The notes beneath the pieces were generated by a model. The model was not told the origin of the DNA. It was given only the letters and a program-made list of their open reading frames with translations, and did not search any database. A stretch of 42,571 bases of DNA from Klebsormidium nitens (lineage: Eukaryota; Plantae; Klebsormidiophyceae), in assembly GCA_000708835.1 (NCBI GenBank), contig DF237647.1, positions 1-42,571 on the forward strand, written 5' to 3'. The position numbers and the translations under genes are program-made. Positions within the stretch are counted from its first letter, which is position 1. Every line of letters begins with the position of its first letter. This document shows, piece by piece, positions 6,384 to 23,000 of the stretch.

Positions 6384-9300
6384 TCACGCCACCCCGAGCG
6401 CTTTCATCCCCTGCTCCGCCTTCTCCATCAGCCCGTGCCCCGCCTTCTGCATCAGCCCGGTGGCAGTCCCCCGGGGCGCCACCTGGGGGAGGAATTTTCA
6501 CATTTGCAATAGTAAGCTTTAGCAATAGTCAGCTAACCAGCCTGGGACGGGTAGGGTTACTTTGGGGGTTAGGATGGGCTCGGATGCGGAGCAGGGAATT
6601 TTGTGGGTTAGGTTTTCAGTATTAGGGTGGTGCTTACTATTGCTAGAGCTTACTACCTATTGCTAAAGAAGGGACATACCTGGCTGCACACCGGTATGGT
6701 ATGCCACGAGTTGCAGTTAAGTCCCCGGTAGTTCCAAATCTCGGCGGTGGTGCGCGGCTGGGTGTTCCACGCGTCGTCAAAGGCCTTGCACGTAAGCGTC
6801 ATCTTGCCGCCCACAGCCTTTTTCTCGGACGGGATGGGCACCGAGAGCTCCCACAGGGCCCATGCCCAGGCGCGGCCCTCAGGCTGCGAGCGCCCCTCGG
6901 TGATCCTGCCGAAGAGAAGCTGGTAAGAATACTCCTCTACAGATTTACATAAAAAGATCGACTTTTGGAAGGAAAGAGAAAACAACGAGCAACTTGATTA
7001 ACAAAGAACCGTTGGAGCTGTAATTTTCAGTTGCAGCCCAAGATTTGGGTTTGTAACAGCGTTCAAGATTTGGGTTTGGAAAAGCGAAGGATGAATGGAG
7101 GGCCAGCAGAAGATTCGAAAGGACGCCAGAGACTGGAATGGAATCGAATCAGCGCCGGAATAAGCTGGATAAACTGGACGCTTGTGAACAGAACGCGTTA
7201 GCGCTTACTTGGCCTGGGTCCAGCTCTGCCCTTCATCCGAAGACACGTCCACCCGCACAATGGCGTGGCCGTCGCCCGACCACGCATAACCCTTCACTGC
7301 AGCCAGGTGATGGAAGAAGCTCGATGAGTGAGTTCCTCAAAACAGAATTGATTTCTATTGAATGTTGAAAGAGCCGGCCACACTCCGAAGAATGGCAGTT
7401 TGCATCGAAGCCGAATGCCTGCACAGTACTAGGTAGAAAATCCTTTCCAGATGTTATTGCATTCGGAACATAGACTAGCTCCAGCGGCGTAACTTCGAAA
7501 GAAACATAGCTTCTCTCAAGGACTCGTCAATAGATTCTGTTGTAAGGAGGGAGATCATCATGTAACGGGGTAAACTCTCGACTCTTTCGAACGGGATTCC
7601 AAAGCGGATGGACTTGACAGTTCAATCCTACTGATCAACCGAAGCCGGAATAACCGACCGGTCACACTAGATCTAGATAGTAACTCAGAGATTCGATAGG
7701 CTCGCCTTTGATGCTGGTCTGGTCGGGTGCTATGATTGACCCGGCAGTCGGCATGAGGATCGCGGACTGCACGGGCAGCGCCATAAGCGGCGCGCACTCC
7801 TGCGGCTTTGCCTGCTCGTGCACTTTGACGCTCGGCGGCGCGGGGCGGTAGTCGATCTGCTGCCAGGGGCTCTGCGAGTCCGTTGCGGAGAATAGAATCC
7901 GCTGGAGCCATTTGACGGAACGGGTGCCCACGTAACCCGGGACGATCAGGCGCACCTGGAGCAAAGGTAACACAAGTGAGTCAAATCTTGCACGGTTGGG
8001 GCCTGGAATAGCTCCAGAATGCTACTTCGCTGAATCCTGGTAAAGAAGTCTGAAGCAGTCTCAACACTCAAAGAAGAGCGCATGGAACTTTTTGGAGCTT
8101 GGCCGCTGTATCCTCAAAAGATGCTCAATGGTTGCTCAATGTTTGCATCTCAGCTGCCTTCACACGCCCTCTTGGCAGCTTTCGACTTCTACTCTGGGCT
8201 GTACCTGGCTCTGTTTAGGACAGCACAAGGTTCTCAAGCAGACGGAGACCAGAAAGCGCGAGAACCTGACCACCCCCCGCCACCCACCGGGTACCCGTGG
8301 TCGGGCGGCAGCTCCTTGCCGTTCATCGCGTATGCCACGATGACGTCGCCCTTGACGTCAAGCGCCTTCTGGGTCGAGATAGACGCCTCGAAGTGCTGCT
8401 GCGTAACGCGGTGCCAGTCCAGCCCGGTGGCGGTCAGCCACTTGGCGCCCAGCTGGCGCGCGCGGTCGGGGTCCAGCCCGATGTGGCGCGCGAGGTCGCG
8501 CACGCGCACGCCCGTCCACTCGGCGGTGCTGATCGAACCTGCTCGGGGGCGGCGGGGCGTCAGCGCGGAATGAAAGAAGATAAGATACGCAAGAAAAGAC
8601 GTAGGGCGTATTGCCCGGGAACGAACCACAAAATGCGTTATGAATCGAGACTACCCAATTCGGTCAAGTCTCCGCCAAGCAAAATTTCTGCTTCAAGCAA
8701 AATCTCAACAGGTTGCAGCTAGAAGAGGGCTCCCTGAGGTAACAGCACTTACAAGATCCCGGGCCGTCTAAAATTTACGAAACGTCTTTGTAGACCCTAA
8801 AGTGTCATCAAAGCTCTTCAGGAGTTCCTTAAAGAAACAACCGTTTCCAAAACGCCAGAGAGCTTAAGGGAAAAGGCAAGAACGTGAAATAAGCAGCCAG
8901 CCCACCCGCGTTCCACGGCGCGCGGCCCGACACTGTCTCCACCGCGCACATGTCGTTCCGCCGGTTCCCCGCGCACTGCAGCGTCACGGTGAGCGTCACC
9001 GCCTCAAACTTGTCCTTCAAATCTTGCACCGTCAGCTCCGCGCAAAACAGCTTCAAGTCGGGGTCGCCCTCGACTACGATCTTGTGCGTGTTGATCGTTC
9101 CTGCGTTGGCGGGAACTGGCAAGTGGTTCCGCACGTAGTGAATCTCGTTCGGTGTGATGAAACGGCTCAGCAGGACGCCGTGAGGGGGCTCGCCTGCAGG
9201 CCGGACGTTTTGGGGTGGTTAGATCCAAGAACGTTTCAGAGAGGAGGCTCAGGCCTTGAGAAGGATCTGAATCCACGGGAACGAGCTGTCTAATCAAAAA

Positions 9301-12300
9301 GCTTGCCGTAAAGAGGAAGCGCCTGGTGCGGTTATACGGTTTTCTTTTCAGTCCTTAACATGTTGAGTGTATGTTTCCGTTTTTGAGGGCAATTACCATA
9401 CGAAGATGCTATTTGCGTTGGTTCCGCTCGCAAGCGGGCCCTTACGAAGCGGGCATGCGCCCCGCTCTCGCTCAACAAAAGCTGCGACGGCACGTGATGC
9501 TGCCTTTCCCGGGTGACTCTTTTGCTTGCACTTCTATCTCATTTTCTCCTCGTTATTTGCTTCGCTTTTCAGGCCGCCTTCCCTGCTGCCCTCCTCCCTT
9601 TTGACTCGATCACGACACACCGTTTCCTCTCTTGTTGCTCACCGTTGAATGGCTTGTAGCACTGCACCACGATGTCGGGCGTCCGCTGCGGCTCGTCCTT
9701 GTACTCGTGCTCCTGCTCCGGCTCCAGATTATTGGGGTCCACCGGCTGCATCACCGCGCCGCAGTAGTCTGACACCGCCTTGTTCAGCTCGCCCGGGGCA
9801 GTCTCGCGCTGGAGCAGGCCTGGGTGCAGATAACCGGAATGGGTTACGACGGGTTTGATATGTTTGCCGACAGAAAAGTAGGGTGGAATCCAGAGGCACT
9901 AGCTTGAGAGCGTATGCAGTTAAGCGGGACGCGATAACGAAGCTTCTGAGGTCGGGCGACGGTTTAGTAGACACCTCTTTGGGCGTGCTCTCATGCTCAC
10001 CGAGGCGACTCACTTATCTTTGTCTGAGCAGGGCGGCGACACACTCCACTTGCACTTCTCAACAAGCTGCTGGTTAGAAACGTGATGACCTTGACTTCCC
10101 GTGAAACGGGGCAAGAATCCTACTGCATGCGAATGGCAAACTCCACGTTTGGAGCGCAGCTCGTGAATTTTTCCGAGTTCGCACAACAACAAGATTCGTT
10201 GTGTGGGACCGGTGCAGATACGACCGTCTCCCAAAGATCGACGAGATAAGGAGGACAACGAGCGGCCGCATGCCGAAGAGAGAAATGTCAGCGCACCGTT
10301 GTTGTTCCTTGCGCCGGTCGCTTCGACGATCCCGCCGATCGGCTCGTGAATCGGAGCATCGCCTGTAACAACCGGGGCGTCGACCGGGAGAAGCCTGCCC
10401 AGGCCAAGCCGCTCCTTGAGGACCTTCCTGGGGAATCAAAGGAATGGAGTACGTAGTAGTGAGTGAACGAAACGAAGGCTAAAACATACAAAGGCATTCA
10501 CAGGTTTGGTGCATGATTCGGGGGGAATATAATGAGCGGGGGCCGAGGATAGTGACCGCTTTTAGCAAGGCGCGACTCCGACGTTGAGTAGACAGATGGA
10601 TGTGTCGGGTAAGAGGAGAAGAGCTGGAGGAAGGCCATGGTCACACGCGAACCGACACGTTAAGTGTTTGGATCCGATGCAAAGTGTTAAATCACACATT
10701 CTACCTGGTCAAGGCATGCCGTATCTCAGTTGGAATGAGGCGCAATTCCTAACCGGAACAAACCATCTCAGACCTCGGCGCGGAGTCCCACTTCCGGGTC
10801 AACAAAAAACCGAAGTTAACGACGAAATTAACGACGATTTTGGCTGTGGTCGTGAGCGAGCCTTCTGGGTGCCCTTCGCCACTCGCGAGCAACTGTGGTT
10901 TATGACACAACGACTGGGTGCAGCGCTCGTTACCTGATCTTGTCCGGCGAGTCGAACTCGGCCTTCTTCACCTGGACCACCGTCAGATTCTCGTACTTGG
11001 CCAACTTCTGCACGAGGAAACGGGTCTTGAATCATCAAGCTATTTCTCTCGAAAAACAAATCTCCACGACCGGAGTACACTTCAGCCTCCCGACAGCTCT
11101 TCTGCGTCTCGTTCAAAATTCAGAGGTCACTCCAAGTAAGCCGCTGGCGTTATTCTGGTCAAGTGCGCAGATCCTTTCCGCTCGTCCAGTCAATCATCTG
11201 GACGAGCGGAAAGGTCGACCGAAGCGGATTAGCCGATCGCAAACGTTTCCATGTTTTGAGACCGTGGGAACTCTTGCAATTGGAAAACTCGACCTTCTCG
11301 ACCCCTTCAAGACCCTTGGCAGATGTTTTCCGTCCCAACCTTTTCGACCTCCTCCGGTTCGTGGTGCTCCAGATTGATCAGCGTCACGCCCCGGCCTTTC
11401 TCGCCCATCACCGAGGCAAAGTGCCCCACTAGATTGAGCAAAATCTCGGTGTCCCAGGTTCCGGGGTTGCCCTCCGGGTTGTTAACTAGTATGTCGAGCG
11501 CGCCATGCCGCGAGAGCACGTTGAAGCACAGCTGGTCGACCGTCTCTTTGTTGTGCAGCTGAACCGGGTGGATGTCAACCGTTGACGGCGCGCCGATGCT
11601 GCCGCACCGTTTCGCGATCTGCAGAGCATCGAATGAAAGGACCCATTCTATTTGTGATCGGCCAAATAAATACATGTATCGACTCCATGTCGTCAAAAGT
11701 AAGATTTCAGCTATTGGGTTCTTTCGAAGGCACCTGATCATCAATGCTATGAGCCTCCCGGGTTTGAGTTTCTAGTGCCAATCGCCCTTCCACGTATATT
11801 CGTGGTTTTGGGGCTTGAACGCCGATATCACAATGGCCAGCAACGAGTGAAAGCAGTCTAGGTTGATGAATTCAGGTTTCGTGATAAAACTCTGTGCTTA
11901 CAAGACTTCACTGACCTTGTGAGCACCTTTTCCATTTTAGGGGGACTCCCCTTGCACAGGTGTCATCCTAAAGCAAGTAGAAACTTGAGCTGAACCAAAA
12001 CATCCCGCCATTAAAAATCTTCAGAGAAGTGATGTTTTGAACCTCTGGCCTTGGACTGTATGGGCTCAGACCCCATCCGAGCGATTTGCCAGAAGTTCTT
12101 TAGAATCGAGTGCGAAAAGGCACTACTGAAGAAGGTCGGTCAGTCTGACTAGCAGTTGAATTAGCTGCCAACTTCCGAAATTGATCCTGTAATTTTTCAG
12201 TATGGGGCCAGATGAAAGCTGCATTCTTCAATCTGACCTTATACGTAAGAACTCCTCCATGGCCTATAACCATCGCAGAACCGGAGTTGACTAAGGAGTC

Positions 12301-12881
12301 GGCCACCTTGGATTTGATCAATGGGGCTCTGACCCATGCATCGACTTCCAATCAAAGTACATGACCCCTCCTATTCTGACTTCAACTCTGCCCATTGACC
12401 ATCAGAAAACTGCTGTTTAGAATCCAGACCAGAAAAGCTACCAGCTTACAACAGGATACAACCTTGCCATCCAGACCTGCATTTCACTGAGCGTTTTGCA
12501 AGCCCACACACTGATTAACCTGCACATAAGTGCACTGAGACAAAGGCCCGGGCCATTGGCACTCAAGGAGTAGGCTGCAGTGCTTCTGTAAAATGAGCCA
12601 CTGAACCCTGTTGCTTGGAGATCGAGGGCCACTTCTGAGCAGCAATGTTAAAGTTCGTCAGCTTGGCCTTGACGCAGAAACGGCATTTCGTTTTCGCTGC
12701 TGAAACAGCACTTTGAGTTGTCTCTCCTCACCTTGCCCAGCTCGTCCCGCTGGCCCGTCTCGCCTACCAGGATCGGGCGCCCACCCTCTTCCGCAAAAGT
12801 GTAGGAGATGGTTCTGCCCAGCTCGGTGATCACCCCCGAGATGAGGCACACCAAAGGGGCCCGTGCCTGGTGGCCCGCCAT
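6384..12881 (-). CDS. Sulfite oxidase (Moco + dimerisation domains) with an N-terminal degenerate SDR/Rossmann-like domain, 670 aa
   Basis: Eleven exons: 12881-12732, 11618-11340, 11007-10934, 10427-10297, 9819-9643, 9193-8906, 8538-8288, 7955-7706, 7296-7209, 6905-6680, 6482-6384 (2013 nt, all phases match). SO motifs: [65 protein letters not shown]. The SO identity is firm. Inclusion of exons 1-4 in the same transcript is inferred from splice-phase continuity. Confidence 0.85.
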
Positions 12882-12926
12882 GTCCCAGATCTATCCACCG
12901 ATCCCAGGACCAGCCAAGCTTGTTCA

Positions 12927-13043
12927 GAGAACGCTAGGCGCGTTGTGCGTAGCTCTCCTGCAACTTATCTAGCCGCTTCGGAATCCAGCCAACACTTACT
13001 CGGAGAACGCCAGGCTCGTTGAACAAAGCTCTCCAAACTTATC
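12927..13043. repeat. Imperfect ~43-bp direct repeat just upstream of the SDR-SO start codon
   Basis: GAGAACGCTAGGCGCGTTGTGCGTAGCTCTCCTGCAACTTATC (12927-12969) vs GAGAACGCCAGGCTCGTTGAACAAAGCTCTCCAAACTTATC (13003-13043), 34 of 43 aligned positions identical. Confidence 0.75.
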
Positions 13044-13424
13044 GCTGCTGAATGGTGCGTACGCCAGCTGGCGAGAAACAAGGACATTCTCTGTTTGGCA
13101 GGCTGTCAAAAGTCACTGAATGCCTAGTCCTACAAGCAAGGTGGACTGCTTCTGGCGCTCTGAGATACTCGGAATCCTTACGTACAGCTTTCAGTAGCAA
13201 CTTCGCATGCAAGTACAGGACTTATTAGCTGAGCGCGGCACTCACGCCGGTGGTCTGGCAGCCTTTCAGGTCAGTCAAAGGGCGCTTGCATTCCAGACTA
13301 GCCCTTACGATACCGGTACTGAACTTTGAAGCATCACCAGGCACAGAACATTTGCCCTCAGAATCCGGGACGAGCATTTATGATCTGCAGCTAGTGAGCT
13401 AGGGCGATTTGCATTCAATGCGCC

Positions 13425-13541: not shown

Positions 13542-14078
13542 CAAAGTTGCGATATGAGCCTATAGATATTAGTGTAGCTCTCGAGGGCGCAGCAGAAGCA
13601 ACGGCCGCCACAGCGGCTTCTAATACGTGACCCACGTCGTTCTTGCAGGCTATTGTGTAGGCATATGAGGGGCATGGCCAAAAATGGTCAGTATCCGTTA
13701 ATGCAGGTTTAGTCTTGCATTAGCAAACAAAGTCTGCAACCAGGTATATTCCTGTCTGCAACACTGAAATGAGGAACCTCAAACCTCCATGTGTTGTAGA
13801 AAGTCACGTCAGCTGCAGGTGAGACCCTTATCATCAAGTTGAGCTCCTCGCAAAAACCTGTGAGGGATTAGTATATCGATTCCACAAAGCTCAGTCCGAC
13901 AATGTGAAGTACGAACGATTTCAACAGAGAAATTAGCGAGGTAGCAGAAACATAGTTCTGTTTGCAACGTCTTATGTGCAATGTCCCCTCGCCCCTCAGG
14001 AATTGTCGACATCTGTAAGAGTACAATACAAGACCCCTCGTTATGTACAAGCGTGCAACGCAGAGCTTCCAAAGTTAC

Positions 14079-17000
14079 TTAGTCATCCAAGCCCACGACG
14101 GGCCGTTTCTGCCCGTCCTCTTCTTCGCCGCTCTCTTCCCCACTTTCCTCCTTCTCCCCCCCCACCTCGGCAGCCGGACCAGCACCCCCCTGAACCGAGA
14201 CTTTCTGGTCCTTCCCGTTCGCCAGACCCACATCGAGCTTGCGGGTCTGTCGGTGGAAGAGTTCCGCGATGTAGGAAGGGGGCGTGGAGTCTTCCGGCTT
14301 CTTGTCCGGCCGCGTCTGCGCAAGATGGCCACGTGGCTGTGAGCAGACGTGTTGCTGACGTGTTGCTGAGCAGCTGCGTAATTGACAATCACCGCTTCCG
14401 ACAGACACTTATACCCCGGTCATAACGGCCGAGCAAGAACAACTCACTGTAAATCCAAAGGTCGTTCCTCAACACTTTCAAAGCAGAACCAGTAACAAAA
14501 CCAATCCGCGGGTTTCGGTTGCGGCCGCCATTATCACAAACCAACGTTAAGCCCTATGGGGGAGTCAGAGGCAAATCTCCCAACGACAATATAAAGATGA
14601 TCACAAAAACACCTCTATCAAAAGTGCGCGACGTTGAATAAGTAAATTAAGGACGCGGCTCCCCACCTTGATCATACGCGGGAAGCGCATGGAGATGCCA
14701 CGTGTCGGGTGCACCAGCCCGGCCGCGGCCGCGTGCACGGGCGACACGGTGAGGTCCGCCCCGCGGATCTCCCACACGTCGTGCGGACGGAACCACACGT
14801 CCGGCTGCTCCAGCGTCCGGTAGTACGGCGGCTTCTGGTCCAGCTGCCGCTGCTCGCGGTACAGCTGCGTCGTCTGCGGGGAAAAGGGGCGTAACTAGGG
14901 ATGGGCTATTTTGAGGCGACTGCTGGTTTAGGATAATAGCTGGGTTGTCTGCAATGTTGCCGGGTAAGACAGGCCAGCTCAAGCCAGGCTAGACCCTGCT
15001 GACAACCCCTGAGTAGTCCTGGCGCCTTGCAGAGGTGAGAGGAACTTGGTTATTCTAACGGAAGAACCCCGCATCAACCAATTGCTTGGGTGGTAGTAGA
15101 TGGTCTTGAATCATGATCTAGCACCACAGAGAGCGGAAGAGTGTACCCGAGCAACTATATTACGGGAGCGATAGAAGTCTGATGCCGTGCCCAAGAGAAG
15201 GTCTCAATTCCTTTATAGGCGGCGTCCGCGCAACCGGCCATAATAACAGAAAACCTATTGGCGCATCAAGAACGATGACGGTAGCATTGCGCGATTGAAC
15301 AGTGCTTGGGGGAAGCTCCCGACCTCTTTGAAGAGATCGTCCGTGAAGCCGGACATGCTACCAGACTGGTCTTCGCGGCACATCAAGACATTTACGGTAG
15401 CGTTTGGGGCGTGCTCGGGGACTTCTACCGCCTTCTTTTCAAAAGACGTCCGTGAAGCCGGACATGCCACAGCAACAAACAAAACTTCGCGGTCGATCAA
15501 GAACGAACACAATAATGTTGCGCATTTGAAGCAGTGCTCGGGGTGAAGTCCCGACCTCTTTGTAGAAGACGTCCGTGAAGCCGGACATGCAGCGGCAGAC
15601 GCTCTGGTACTCCTCCCGGTCGGGGTCGTAGCAGCCCAACAGGAACGGACTGAACCAGCCCACCTGCGGACACACCGGACGCGAGCTTGAGCATACGAAT
15701 GACCGTCCGCACACGTGACGCGGCAATGCAAGGCCATTCCGACGCCAAGGGACAGTCAGACAATCCAAGTGGACGAACGATGGCAGCATTTAGTATAGAC
15801 CCTTACTGGAGTTGATGTTTCCCTGTATTTTTTTGCATTCCTGCGTTCTAACCTATTACTTTCCTGGCGGCCTCCTATGCAGCAACTCAACCGACTGGAG
15901 ACAACGGCGGCCTCAAAAGTTTACTTACGGGTTGCTCTTTTCATCAACGGACTCTGGCCGGTAAATTGCCGAATCCAACGATGTGCCGAGCAACATCTTC
16001 ACCTTGCAGATTGCCGTGATGGCGGAAACAACGCCACAGGACGTGGAAGTACAGCAGACCATCATGCCCTCTGCGATCCTGGACAGCGACACTATTGAAA
16101 CCATTGGTCATCCGAAAAAGCGCCTTACCTTTCGGCCCTGGCCGTACCAGGCACCAATGGGCACCAAGTCCAAGGAGTCGTTCAAACCCTCGATGTAGTC
16201 CTTCTTCACCTGCAAAAGGGTAACCGGTACTTGAGCCGACACTCGTACCTTTGCAAACGAAGTCGATTGCGGAGCCAATTGGCCATGGAGCAATCACAAC
16301 TTGGGAGACAAACAGCACTAAGAAACCTTCTGAAGTCTCGAAGTCCCGAAATGCTCGTAGAAAGCTCAGACACCTAACTTAAGCCGCGTCTTTCCGAAAG
16401 AGGGACAGAAAGCCATGTGAATCTATCATCAAACCCGAACTCTCAATTCCCGAAAGCTCCACGTGTCAGAGCGCGCAGAAAAGGCGCACCTTGAGCCAAG
16501 AGTCGCTGCGCTTGCTGGCGGCGTACCCCGCGTCTTTGTCGAGCGCTTTCACCATGATGCCCTCGCACGACGCCGCGAAGGCGTCCTGCAAAAAGGTCTG
16601 CAGCAGGGACGAGGTCGCCTCCAACTCGGGGTCCGACTCTGGCTCCTCCACCTGCAACAAAAAATCCTCGCCGCTCTAATTTCCCGCAATTGATGCTGGC
16701 TGGCGTTTGTGACGTGAGCATCTAGAAAATCCGGTCGTTTTAGAGGAAGTTCTGCGGTGATACTAATCGATCGGCATGGCGCCTGGATGAGGCCTGCCCA
16801 ACGGAATTGCGCTCACTTCAGGGGCATCGCGAGCAACTGCCAGAGTTGAATCTCTATCCGGCGGCATACGTCACCCCGCCAACCTCAAAGTCAAATTTTG
16901 AAAATTGGGTACCAAACTGCCAAGCCGACTTTTCGAGACCGTCAGACTTCAAGAATCCGCTCTCAAATCCTGAATGACAAGAATCAGCAGGGTAACCCAC

Positions 17001-20000
17001 CGTCGCTTCCCGCGCAAACTCGAAGTGCCCCGCCGAGTGTTTCGGAAACGCGGCGTGCATACGTCGGCGCCGCTCGCGGAACGACTCCTTCACCAGCGCC
17101 TGTCCGTCGACGAACATGAGGTCGAACGCGAAGACGCACACCGCGATCTTGACGTCAGCCAGCTCGATCTTGGTCTTCTCACCGCCGCGCGCGCGCGTGC
17201 TGAGCGTCTGGAAGGCCATCAGCTTGTTGCCCGCGCTGCGATCCACCGCGACCAACTGCGAAGCAGATTGGCATTTGCAAGTCAGCCGCTTGCGAAAGAC
17301 TCAGCCGGGCCCTCGATGACGCTCCTTGATTCAGTCATTGCGAGCTGGAGCGCTCCAAAACCTCTCGCCAGGGCGGAAGAACATTGCTGCTTGCCAGTTC
17401 ATGATGATGAATTTTGTGATCCGGGAGAGCCAGAGAACCGTTGTTCAGGGGCCGTTCACAAGGAGAAGTAAATTTGCTGGTTCGACCTCACCTTGACTAC
17501 TCATAGCGCTATCGGCAAGCTTCTGATTAGACGCAAAAAATCTTCAACATTCGACACCGCCGAAACGTCCGTACAAGAGACCGTACCTCAGCGTCGATGA
17601 TGAAGGACGAGCAGCCGCCACGTGCAGCCTGCTTGACGGTCGCGATGACGTCAGGGAACTTGGCCGTGTTGTCATCGCAATTGCGGGAAAAGATGCGCAC
17701 CGTCCCGTCCGGCAGCAAGTGGATCTGCGCGCGCTGTCCGTCGTACCTGCGGACAAGCAGACGAGATGACGTCCGGTGTTTGAATATCCTCCCGGAGAGG
17801 CTAGACGACGGGAAGACTGCGGACGCACCTAGGGCCAAAAGCTTTTGCGAGACGATACTTCATTCTGTCGGCCAATGCTAAGTCCCAAACGATGAAAGGA
17901 TGTTACAAAAACTGTTGGCGCTTCTTGAGTTCGTGAGTACCAAAACAAGACAGGACTGCATACACCGACAGGAAAGGCGACAAATTTTTCAACGGCTGAC
18001 AGATTGTTTTCTCTATGGCCGTTTGAGTGGGAGATTTCCTGAGCATGTTTCCAATGCCTGTACGTAATACAATCACATCATCTGGGACCTCTAAAAGTTC
18101 TCACTTGAACTCGGCGGTGAAGGCCTGGCTTTGGAACCTTTTGAGGACCTCCGGGATGCCGTTGGTGATCTTGGCGAGCATGGGCTTGATGGGCGTCCCA
18201 AGGGCGACCGCGCCCTGAGCGATCACTGCCTCGATGCCGCCCTCCACCAAAGTCGGCACTAGCACGTCCTGCGAATAGATACGCGACGTATAACTTTCTG
18301 AGGACGTACAATGTCCGCTGAAAATAAGAGCATACGGTAAGAGATACGTCTCACCCGCCTTACGCGCTTGCAGCGCTGAGCTTCCGGAAACGAACGTTGG
18401 TCTTCAAAATGTCTTACTTGTGTGATTGACCTCATCGGCACATTGCGGCTATGGGTACAAGTCGTAAAGGAAGGGCCCAAATTGACGTACTCTAAGGCGT
18501 TGGGGTTAACGAACGGGTGTTGACAAATGAGTCGAAGGCAAAACGGATTTAGAAACTGATCAGGAAAAAATCAGCTCAAAAGTCCGGACTCAAAATCAGC
18601 ACAAACCACCATCCGGCACGCACCAGGTTCGGACAAAAGTTGTACGCCTCAACGACGGCCGCGGACGCTTCCTGCAGCTTCGATTTCAGGCCGTTGATGG
18701 CAGGCCCGGCGGGGGCATCGGACGGCAGGGATTTGTGGATGACCACAGCTTGGGCCAGGGCGGGGAGCACGGTCTTCATCATGGCGCCGATGCGCATGTT
18801 GAGGATAAGCGTGCGGACCACAAACTGCGTCTCTTTCTCGCGGCACGCGCGCAAAAGTCCTAGCACAATGTTTTTCTTCCGGTTATTGCACCCCGGGCCG
18901 GTCTCCTTGCTGCACGGGATAAAACGGGGATCAGATTAATAGCATCTTCGAAGTTCACAGTGTCCTTCCAGATTTCAGGCTTTTCTGCGTGCTTGACGCG
19001 AAGGGTCTCACCTACGAACGAAACCTTTGAAGGCAGAGTTCTAGGGGGCTTTACGAAAATTTTGAAGTGGGACATTATGCACGGTGAAAAGACTGCTTGC
19101 GGCCTGTCAATCCCCTGGCTCTGCTTAACGTCGATAAAAGCTTGAGACCCGTTGGCTACATGATACTTGCACGGACAGGTTCTGGACAGGTTCTCTTCCA
19201 GCCCCATCTCAACTGGAGGCCGACGACTTTCGTTAAACCAGTTAGCTCCAAAATCGCCTACAGAAGAAACTTTCTTTACCGGGCTTGACAGCCTCCTTAC
19301 GGCCGACGAGCTGGTTCCCACCATTCTATCCCGAACGTTGCTCACAAGCCCACCTGATCTTACGCAGCGCCCGGTAGACCTGCGCCACCCGCAAGGGGGG
19401 CGGCGCCATGAGCGTCGCCTGGCGCTGCTTGCACGCGAGCGCCACGTCACCCAGATCCCCCAGAGAGTTGTACAGCTCGCGCATTTGCGCTTTCGACGTG
19501 CCGGTAGCTTCGGCGATGGCTGCCCCGACTGTGCTGCCCCCTATGCTCATGTCGACGTTCTCGAAGTCGGGGGCGACCCGGTTGGTGGACAGGTACACGG
19601 CGGGCAGAATGTCGTCCGGAGAAAGCGCGAGCAGGCTGCGGGTTGATTGAGAGGGCAAGGGGATTAGCAAGAATGGCACGCTGAGTATGTACTGATTTCT
19701 AGAGGTTGAAGATAAAAGTCGGTCGTAAGGGAAATCAGCAGACAGTGGCACCCTGATCAAGGACTGCTTTCCTAGAGATTGACGATAAGATGCAACAACC
19801 GTAGTCTTACCTGCTGAGCTTGTGGAGAAACCAACCGGATCCCAGGCCCAGCAAACAAAGCACTGAATGGCTACTTTGGTTAGAATGAGCTCTGCGAAGT
19901 TGTAATTCCGGCTACAAAAACTTGGATCCCTTCCGGAGATCCTCCTCCGGAAATGCTTGGAGGCTCATAACAAAACTCGTAGCTGCATGCTCAAAAACAA

Positions 20001-23000
20001 TTTCGGACTCTCACGCACCTCCTGAACATGTTGCACAGGATGTCCGCCATCTTGAGGCGGCCCCGCTCGCGCTCCAGGATCTCAAAGGTGCGCGCCAGGT
20101 GCAAATACGGCGCGGCCTCCCCGCGCGTCCAACACGCTGCACAGAAGGCAGAGTCCAGTTCGGTATCAGACCGTGGTGTGGTTGAGGTAAAGTTCCACTT
20201 AGGTCCCACATTGTCCCGGACTTCGTCGGAAAACAAGCAGCCATGGAACGCTTTAGCGATTTGGCAGACCCATAATCCATTGCTCGTCACCGCATGTCCA
20301 TACTTAAGTGGATCGGAATTGACAGGCTAAACAGTGACTCTACTTTCGGCGCACTCAAGGAGCGGTGTACTTCTCCCGCTATTTCGTCGATGCAAAGAGG
20401 GAGGTTTGCAACACCACTGATGGCTAGAAGTTGTGGCAGTCCACTATGGGGGCCTTGGCACAGTCAATCAGCAGACTGATTCACGGTAGGCCGTGGTTTT
20501 ACGAGGAGCCACTTACCGTGTCCAATCGGGTCGTACTTCGCCAATGAGAGCGTGACAGCTGTCCTCTCGCTCTCACTCGCGCCCAACTTCCCGGTCGCCA
20601 CCACGCCCCCCAGCTGCCTTTCGGAAGGAAGAACCTTGTTCCCCTTCTCGACTTCCTTGGCCCCATTTGCACCCCCCTTTTCTTCGGCAACCTCTTCCTT
20701 TTCTCCCCCCTCTTTAGAGTGCTCGCTATTTTGCGTCTGGCGCGCCTCTTGAGACTGTCGCACCTCTTGAGACTGCTGTTTGCCGTTCAGTTGCGACCCA
20801 AGGTCCCCGTCCCGCGGCGTCTCTGCGCGTGCGACGTGTTTGGATACACCATCCTCCTCTTTCTCTTTCGGCGGATCAACCTCTTCCGGAGACTTTTCCG
20901 CAAGAGCTCCCTCCTCCGTCGAACATGCCCCACCCTTCGCTTCTTGAGGCCCTGTAGCGACCCCATCCCGCTCCCCAGAAGCATGCGCCTTGCTGTCCCC
21001 TCCCCCCGTAACAGGCCCCTCCCGACTGTAAAACAGATCCAGCGCACGATTGACGTCACCCTCTGCTTCTTTCAGCAGAGCTTCCGCTTCCTCCTTCCCC
21101 AGACCGCCATCTAGCAGCCCAAGCAACTGACCCACGTTGGCTTCCAGGGACGCTGCCCCTTCTCCATCCGACTCTGTCCGCTCCCCCGCTTCTCTTGCTT
21201 CTGGATGCTTCCCTCCAAACTTATCGCCACCTTCTTTTGTATGTCCGCTCTCCATCCCATTGGTTTTCGCCCCACTGAGCCCCTTCGCCCCCATCGACGG
21301 CTGCTCTTTCTTCCCCCCGCCAAAGAAGCTCAAGATCGACGGCTGCTGCCGGTCCGTTTTCCCTTTCTTGGCGGCCCCGCCACCGGCCTTCGAAGCCGAC
21401 GCCCGTTTTCCAGCAACCTGACTCGCCACTCTTTTTCTTGCAGATACGGGCGTTCTGGGGGGGGTCCTCGTCTTCCCTGCTGCAGGCTGCGGAGCGCCCC
21501 CCCCTTTCGGACTCGGACTCGCTTCGGACGTCCGGTCCCTCCTGTCCGCCGTCTGCAGAACGCTGGGACCTTCGTCAGCCTCGTCCCCCGTAGCCCCTTG
21601 GATGACGTCAACACCAGCGTCGGCAACCGCGTCAGCAGCCACGTCAGCACCCGCATCCTGCCGCTCACCCTCCTCCTCATGTTCTCTTCGCAACTCTGCT
21701 TGTTTGACATTACGATCCTCTTCCCCGCCGTTTCTCTCTGCATCCGTTCGCCCCTCCTTCAAATCTTCAGCTGGTCCCCCTTCCGCATGATTAGCCGTGA
21801 CTTCCTCTGCGCACCCCCCATCGTAGAACCAGGTCACCGCCCCTGCAACGTCCCCCCCGGCGCGTGCCAGAAGCAACTCCGCCTTTGCGGCGGTCATTCC
21901 GGGCAGGATTGCGCGCAGTTGTTCTACCTTTTCAAGACTCCCATTCCCTTCCCCCTCAGACTCTCTCTGGCTCTCTTGGGCATGCTCGAGCGTTTCTTCC
22001 TTTACCCCCTTTTCCTCTACCTTCCTTTCTGCACCTGCGTTTGGACCAACAGTGTTGACCGGCGGGTCAACCCCCTGCAGCGCCTGCTTGTGAGCCTGTA
22101 TCCAGCTCAAGCCCTCCCCGGAACCCTTACCTAAATCTCCGTTTGCCACGTCCTCCTTTCTCTCGGGTTCGTCTTCCGCTGCCTCAATTTTCACTTCTGC
22201 CTTGACAGCCTCCTTCACTTTCGGCTTGATCTCAAGCGTCGTTCGCTTCGGAGCATTTCCCTTGCTCTTCTCCCCGTCAAACTTACGTTTGCCACGTCTG
22301 TTCAGCACAGGCGTCAGACGCCCCGGGAGGGGATCCTTTTTCTCAGCAACTAGAAGCGGATCCTTTTCCGCTTTCTCCCCGCCCTTCAACTTCGAACCCC
22401 GCTTTGGTCGACCCCGCCCCTTCCCGGTCTCCCCTTCTTCGCCGCTGACGTCACCTTCCGACCTGCTGACGTCAGCTTCCGAATCCACGTAATCCGGATC
22501 GTCTTTCGCCTGCACCTCTTCTTCCGCCTCGTCACTCTCGTCAAGCCCGTCCTCGTCTTTGACCGTGAGGTCCTGACACGTGTCATCCCGCTCAACAGGA
22601 TTCTGGCACGTGTCCTCATCCACCACATCAACGGCCAGCTCTGCTGCCAGCTCAAGCGCCGGCGGCTTGCTTCCCGAGCCGCTCCTCTGGAAGCTCCGCA
22701 GGAATCGCCGCTTGCCCTCGGTCTCATCGACCAAATTCCTGTATGAATCAGATTGGAATCCAGATCGAAACTGGTTCCGAAGAGAAGTTGCTTGGGTACT
22801 GTGCGTCAGAGACTGGAATCACTGGTGAAAGTAAACGCGCAGATGAAGTGGAAAATGAAGAATACGAAAAGAAGGCTTTCCACGGATCGTTTGCTGGTTA
22901 TTTTCGCACTGCGTGATCTGAAAATCGATTTCGCCCACAGTGACAACATGAACGGCTCTTCTGGGTCTTTTGCTTTGCGAGCTATGCAAAGCCTTTATAT

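Follow-up and report, generated by a model that had tools for sequence, protein, structure and literature searches.

A heme-less sulfite oxidase of Klebsormidium nitens joined by splicing to a probably noncatalytic, SDR-derived N-terminal domain

Very few domain architectures occur in the eukaryotic sulfite oxidase family, namely cytochrome b5 (b5) followed by molybdenum cofactor (Moco) and dimerization domains, Moco and dimerization domains only, and nitrate reductase, and the re-oxidation of the molybdenum (Mo) center depends entirely on the domains attached to it. The only architectures covered in reviews are those of animal and plant sulfite oxidase: the animal enzyme has its b5 domain at the N terminus, whereas the land-plant enzyme is a heme-less core of Moco and dimerization domains (PMC10574614). 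Here, we describe a gene on a contig of the alga Klebsormidium nitens (GenBank assembly GCA_000708835.1, contig DF237647.1, positions 1–42,571; the whole stretch of 42,571 nt is referred to as the window), in which exons encoding a domain apparently derived from short-chain dehydrogenases/reductases (SDRs) are spliced in frame to a heme-less sulfite oxidase. This domain, hereafter the head, is tethered where the animal enzyme has its b5 domain (PMC10574614). Taken as a whole, the observations are best explained by a real 670-aa fusion of a noncatalytic but selected SDR-derived head, a flexible tether, and a heme-less sulfite oxidase, which we regard as the probable reading.

Compared with the animal (chicken and human) enzyme, which consists of b5, tether, Moco, and dimerization parts, the protein has the same pocket residues and likewise carries its N-terminal domain on a flexible tether, and the animal enzyme was the best sequence match for every oxidase exon tested. 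However, the protein has neither a heme domain nor an HPGG-type motif, its N-terminal domain appears to be SDR-derived, and its tether comprises about 80 residues instead of the approximately 10–30 in animal enzymes. The Arabidopsis enzyme (393 aa, peroxisomal, with O2 as acceptor) is similarly heme-less with Moco and dimerization domains, but it lacks an N-terminal domain and ends in a type 1 peroxisomal targeting signal (PTS1), whereas the protein described here carries an extension of 234 aa and has LGVA at its C terminus. Eukaryotic nitrate reductase belongs to the same Moco family, and lineage-specific domain additions are known there, but its b5 and FAD/NADH domains lie C-terminal to the Moco domain. 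The hemoglobin-fused NR2-2/2HbN of Chattonella is one such variant of nitrate reductase (PMC6128913).

No paper on an SDR–sulfite oxidase fusion was found in the literature, and a survey of molybdoenzyme fusions covering about 5,900 genomes, which names new fusions in the sulfite oxidase family, does not include one with an SDR (PMC6147048). In agreement with the original prediction, which knew of no enzyme of this family with an SDR-like domain at the place of b5, the architecture was not found catalogued. A search of 1.84 billion proteins detected the head only in close relatives, although a single 93-aa query of this kind is blind to orthologs below about 35% identity. In the scope of exon-level protein searches and the literature, the fusion is new and so far restricted to this alga and its relatives.

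Structure and Transcripts of the Fused Gene

The gene lies on the minus strand and was rebuilt from the sequence; all coordinates are window positions. Eleven exons, running from 12881 to 6384, yield a reading frame of 2013 nt that encodes 670 aa. Exons 1–4 contain no stop, and the phases on entry to exons 2, 3, 4, and 5 are 0, 0, 2, and 1; the rebuilt model thus reproduces what had been predicted for these exons, and all peptides and motifs noted previously (including LQCAG, VRNH, DYR, and WNYRG) were found in the rebuilt protein. All introns but one are of the GT-AG type, intron 8 having a GC donor. An Rfam scan of the gene found no RNA families.

To examine the continuity of the gene, we used contigs from four public runs belonging to four different studies, which were aligned to window positions 7150–13149. 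These runs are labelled only "RNA?", and the introns are missing from their contigs. Of the eight joints in the range from 7209 to 12732, seven were exact in all four runs, among them 12732/11618 and 10297/9819, and the eighth (8538/8906) was present at its exact position in three of them. At 7208, a loose contig end continues into the first part of exon 10, which fits the ninth joint. In one run (X5), a single contig of 3048 nt extends from 13132 in the 5′ untranslated region (5′UTR) through exon 9 and 1.1 kb beyond. In X1, the run with the greatest depth, there are also weakly covered contigs that retain introns 2, 3, 7, and 8 (depth 4–12, compared with 460–680). By contrast, intron 4 had no intronic coverage in any of the four runs (depth 0 over 9950–10149), and there is thus no sign of upstream exons ending, or of an oxidase transcript starting, in this intron. 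The GC donor of intron 8 (7297–7705, GCGAGC) was spliced exactly in all four runs, at joint 7706/7296. As a separate observation, an ortholog on a metagenome contig (L003, see below) has an ordinary GT at the matching site.

Since exact splice joints occur in contigs of four studies, chance is removed as an explanation. It is confirmed that exons 1–4 and the sulfite oxidase exons form one gene and one spliced mRNA. The original prediction had named transcripts across 10297/9819 and 12732/11618 as a check on whether a fusion or two genes are present; both joints were present in every run, and the two-gene alternative was not borne out.

The SDR-Like Head and the Oxidase Core

Exon 1 (12732–12881, aa 1–50) encodes an SDR-like first beta-alpha-beta unit, and exon 2 (11340–11618, aa 51–143) appears to cover SDR-like strands beta3 to beta5. 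The exons were searched singly, and the spliced head was built locally for comparison with Escherichia coli FabG. A sequence search of the PDB with exon 1 returned five matches, all of them SDRs, aligned at their residues 7–44; with exon 2, the best and nearly all of the 18 matches were SDRs, at approximately residues 50–125. Language-model neighbors in the Atlas agreed: exon 1 fell among clusters of SDR N termini (score 0.96, about 170 common features), and every best named neighbor of exon 2 was an SDR cluster (0.85–0.90). Pfam gave no match for exon 1 at E-values up to 1, and for exon 2 a match to adh_short (E-value 0.02, profile positions 50–113) with 14.8 bits against a cut-off of 26.6.

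Direct comparison with FabG by BLAST gave an E-value of 1.6e-4 (head residues 11–98 with FabG residues 7–87, z 6.3), a score that was reached by one of 2000 shuffles. Using hhalign, an alignment of the head from three species was matched to a FabG alignment with an E-value of 3.2e-5 and a probability of 73% (residues 11–117 with 7–115); this FabG profile offers little more than a single sequence would, because all FabGs in it share 86% identity or more with the query and most are from enterobacteria. The alignment pairs the conserved Asn in the LNL motif of the head with the Asn of FabG helix D, which we take to be the Asn of the SDR catalytic tetrad. A model of the exon-2 fragment showed a strand-helix-strand-helix-strand order (predicted local distance difference test, pLDDT, of 61), with generic alpha/beta matches only (E-values above 0.2).

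Considering that two independent exons both lead to SDRs, SDR ancestry of residues ~10–117 appears to be the only reasonable reading of these individually weak but co-linear lines of evidence. A Rossmann-family match of the N-terminal part had been expected; what was found are almost exclusively SDRs, in co-linear order over two exons, and this part of the expectation holds, whereas support ends at about residue 117. When residues 118–175 were aligned with the catalytic half of FabG, the similarity was not significant, and 542 of 2000 shuffles scored equally high. Strands 5 and 6 may be placed in this region by eye. Exon 3 (10934–11007, aa 144–168), which would form the end of the N-terminal domain, has no significant similarity to any family.

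The residues characteristic of an active SDR are missing. Neither YxxxK nor GxxxGxG occurs anywhere in residues 1–247, and YxxxK is likewise absent from residues 1–247 of the L003 protein. TGxxxGxG corresponds to SGVITELG in the window, to SGVTTELG in a second relative (L001), and to SGVKTELG in L003; the second glycine is thus Glu in all three lineages, and NNAG is replaced by NNPEG. In an alignment made by eye, a Glu appears to occupy the position of the catalytic Ser. The decayed first beta-alpha-beta unit, the change from TGxxxGxG to SGVITELG, and the lack of YxxxK had all been predicted, and sequence and motif searches agree with each of them. As all lineages have lost the glycine and catalytic motifs, the head cannot be a dehydrogenase, and a noncatalytic, SDR-derived half-domain, as proposed originally, is supported. 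Compared with classical SDRs such as FabG, it resembles them co-linearly from strand 1 to helix D and keeps an NNAG-like motif and the helix-D Asn, but it differs by the Gly-to-Glu change in the glycine motif, the absence of Ser-Tyr-Lys, truncation to about 170 residues, and a sub-threshold Pfam match. NmrA-type noncatalytic proteins of SDR fold, with which it may also be compared, still bind dinucleotides.

The head is followed by a Pro/Gly/Ala/Val-rich tether encoded by exon 4 (10297–10427, aa 168–212), the fastest-evolving segment of the gene, and by exon 5 (9643–9819, aa 212–271). Exon 5, whose acceptor (9819) marks the fusion joint, also contains Met235 (ATG at 9751), as had been predicted, and its final residues precede the Moco-domain alignment, which starts at EPP. 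No Pfam Cyt-b5 match was found on exons 1–5 at E-values up to 1. Bromodomain matches of exon 5 in the PDB had E-values above 1 and were dismissed as chance.

The Moco domain is encoded by exon 6 (8906–9193, aa 271–367), exon 7 (8288–8538, aa 367–450; Oxidored_molyb E-value 1e-19), and exon 8 (7706–7955, aa 451–534), which ends it and is followed by the GC-AG intron. The dimerization domain is encoded by exon 9 (7209–7296, aa 534–563; Mo-co_dimer E-value 3e-10) and exon 10 (6680–6905, aa 563–638; Mo-co_dimer E-value 1e-12). With curated Pfam cut-offs of 24 bits for Oxidored_molyb (PF00174) and 22.7 bits for Mo-co_dimer (PF03404), the former scored 33–71 bits on exons 6–8 and the latter 41–49 bits on exons 9 and 10. 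Exon 6 matched Oxidored_molyb with an E-value of 3e-8 and chicken sulfite oxidase with 9e-16, and exon 10 matched the chicken enzyme with 5e-17. In exon 6, LQCAGNRR aligns with the identical motif of the chicken enzyme, that is, with the Moco ligand Cys185 and Arg190, and VRNH (exon 6), DYR (exon 8), and WNYRG (exon 10) align with chicken Arg138, Tyr322, and Arg450, respectively. The Moco Cys and pocket residues predicted to be intact are thus in place.

Scores for four exons were 61, 44, 55, and 65 bits with chicken sulfite oxidase and 39, 32, 42, and 29 bits with the Arabidopsis enzyme (in sum 224 vs. 142 bits), and those with nitrate reductase were far lower. Judged by these alignments, the oxidase from about residue 248 onward is a complete, heme-less Moco and dimerization core with an intact sulfite-type pocket. 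It is closer to the animal than to the land-plant enzyme, a point absent from the original prediction. Exon 11 (6384–6482, aa 639–670), whose splice is predicted, encodes a 32-aa C-terminal tail ending in LGVA and followed by a TGA stop, whose last nucleotide is 6384. L003 has a conserved tail as well, there not separated by an intron, and neither protein has a plant-type PTS1 (SKL/SNL) at its C terminus. Besides the conserved LGVA end, the tail in the window has loose GLMxKA-like repeats.

Conservation in Relatives and the Start of Translation

To find relatives, we compared exon 2 (93 aa) with 1.84 billion representative proteins in an exhaustive HMMER search, which returned two fragments of close relatives (96% and 90% identical). 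Two other matches (P0003 and P0004), which at first resembled a repeat family, proved to be bacterial adhesins with Big_9, Cadherin, and Calx-beta domains and were rejected as repeat artefacts. A word-indexed profile search added one more fragment, 81% identical, from a Joint Genome Institute (JGI) metagenome. When JGI metagenome contigs were scanned with patterns for the exon 1/2 junction and for exon 2, no spliced cDNA was found.

L001, a Logan contig, is syntenic with the window, with a DNA-ligase gene upstream; its exons 1–4 have identical splice sites, and its introns no longer align. Over 211 codons, the ratio of nonsynonymous to synonymous substitution rates (dN/dS) between the window and L001 was 0.16 at a dS of 0.26, and 33 of 53 differences were at third positions. 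For comparison, the neighboring ligase exons gave a dN/dS of 0.077 at the same dS. L003 contains a whole fused ortholog of ten exons with canonical splice sites, the same phases, and an open frame of 651 aa. At a dS of about 1.2, the SDR-like part was 79% identical to that of the window (dN/dS 0.10) and the Moco domain 79.5% (dN/dS 0.15). The best-conserved segments of the head were the region of the former glycine loop and the stretch from NNPEG to the strand-5 region, with 90–93% identity.

The fused frame is retained across deep divergence. Based on a dN/dS of 0.10–0.16 and the maintenance of frame and phases, the head is translated and under a constraint equal to that on the catalytic domain, which agrees with its predicted role as a functional module.

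L003 differs in its oxidase part. Exon 10 (L003:15364–15625) lacks 14 codons, including that for the Arg of WNYRG (the Arg450 equivalent), and there is no intron 10; adjoining the Moco cysteine, CAENRR is present instead of CAGNRR (L003:11948–12235). The whole gene nevertheless has a dN/dS of about 0.14. These changes may represent an altered or weakened sulfite pocket of that lineage, or an assembly error. They are also what would be expected if the Moco part were no longer a true sulfite oxidase but acted on another substrate or were a pseudo-enzyme, with the head as part of the changed function: purifying selection persists despite the losses, and the C terminus is not of PTS1 type. However, the changes are known from a single metagenome contig, and in the window all of the pocket residues examined match the sulfite oxidase type, Tyr and Arg being present where nitrate reductase has Asn and Met. 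We consider such a change of function very improbable.

Upstream of Met1, the transcript is unbroken for at least 268 nt (5′UTR, 12882–13149, minus strand), and an in-frame TAG lies four codons before Met1. Because this stop lies within the contiguous transcript, Met1 is the first possible start of the frame. The 5′UTR also contains an upstream open reading frame (uORF) of 40 codons (12965–13087, minus strand, ATG at 13087) that is out of frame with the main frame; shorter uORFs occur further upstream, if the UTR extends that far.

A second possible start is Met235, which lies 68 nt downstream of the exon-5 acceptor. Its position would fit an ancestral start codon, given that resemblance to the N terminus of Arabidopsis sulfite oxidase presumably begins about 14 residues after it. 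Codons 211–240 (9730–9819), which surround the ATG at 9751, are the coding nucleotides best conserved in the comparison with L003 (identity of 91% over all nucleotides and of 83% at third positions, compared with about 50–60% outside them), and conservation with L003 ends within about 7 nt upstream of the exon-5 acceptor. This pattern suggests constraint on the RNA or DNA itself, for example a splicing enhancer or the context of an internal start. One might then suppose that the fusion is an accident at the transcript level, that the working enzyme is a conventional oxidase of about 436 aa either initiated at Met235 or encoded by a rare internal transcript, and that the upstream frame is irrelevant; the uORFs, which suggest nonstandard translation, would also fit. 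However, this is hard to reconcile with the dN/dS of the head or with the retention of frame and phases at a dS of about 1.2. No contig was seen to start in intron 4, and the 436-aa isoform that had been proposed found no RNA support in the contigs of the four runs. Moreover, Met1 has a purine (G) at −3 and G at +4, and leaky scanning to Met235 is unlikely because three ATGs intervene, one of them in frame (Met121). An accidental fusion of this kind is therefore highly unlikely.

A DNA ligase I-like gene lies directly upstream of the fused gene (approximately 14028–21720, minus strand) and is syntenic in L001 and L003; DNA_ligase_A_N, DNA_ligase_A_M, and DNA_ligase_A_C domains were recognized in the open reading frames of the relatives.

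Possible Role and Origin of the Head

Several points weigh against a noncatalytic, selected head on a working sulfite oxidase. That the four runs are RNA is a guess, though one backed by their intron-free joints, and rare isoforms may exist beside the assembled contigs. The SDR similarity is below the Pfam gathering score and is gone beyond residue 117, and the modelled part, exon 2 only, had no significant structural match. Translation from Met1 is predicted from the sequence, and uORFs precede it. The loss of the Arg450 equivalent in L003 means that selection may not maintain oxidase chemistry in every lineage. Finally, conservation of the head is highest in the segments whose counterparts in true SDRs form the lining of the cofactor cleft.

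Because of this last point, a ligand-binding role retains some probability. The head might have kept the ability to bind NAD(P)(H) or a similar nucleotide. It could then sense redox state or metabolites, as NmrA and HSCARG do, or accept electrons from the Mo center and so functionally replace cytochrome b5. Conservation of the former glycine loop and of the segment from NNPEG to strand 5 would be consistent with such a role, as would the retained Asn of helix D and the tethering of the head at the exact place of b5 in animal sulfite oxidase (PMC10574614). On the other hand, all three lineages have Glu in place of the second glycine of TGxxxGxG, the residue through which SDRs contact the pyrophosphate, and Ser-Tyr-Lys is not retained. 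An Mo(IV) center is not known to hand a hydride directly to nicotinamide without a flavin. On balance, we consider retained nucleotide binding unlikely; somewhat less likely still is the specific form in which the decayed head would bind a nucleotide or redox ligand and thereby gate the Mo center according to the cellular redox state or serve as an electron outlet. If this were true, a Rossmann-type domain would functionally replace cytochrome b5 and provide a new route for re-oxidation of an Mo center in the sulfite oxidase family.

We favor instead a noncatalytic head with a structural or regulatory role. The head (aa ~8–170) would have been derived from a classical SDR by loss of the dinucleotide-binding glycine motif, of Ser-Tyr-Lys, and of everything after approximately strand 6, and the Pro/Gly/Ala-rich tether of about 80 residues looks flexible. 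Sulfite would be oxidized at the Mo center and, given that there is no heme, the electrons would pass to O2 or an external acceptor, as in plant sulfite oxidase. The head would have no enzymatic activity and has probably lost the ability to bind NAD(P). Occupying the place of the mobile cytochrome b5 of animal enzymes, it might act as a tethered module that docks to the Moco domain, recruits a partner, or changes the oligomeric state. As to its origin, what used to be the 5′ leader of the oxidase gene was probably joined by splicing to upstream SDR-derived exons, at a point 68 nt before the old start at Met235; the position of the exon-5 acceptor, together with the presumed resemblance to the plant N terminus, fits such a capture.

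The immediate significance is moderate, as the fusion is lineage-restricted and the role of its head is putative. For the sulfite oxidase family, the gene offers a natural experiment on how a tethered N-terminal domain affects the enzyme. It is also a clear case of a pseudo-enzyme domain under selection, and a datable gene fusion in which upstream exons would have been captured into a former 5′ leader.

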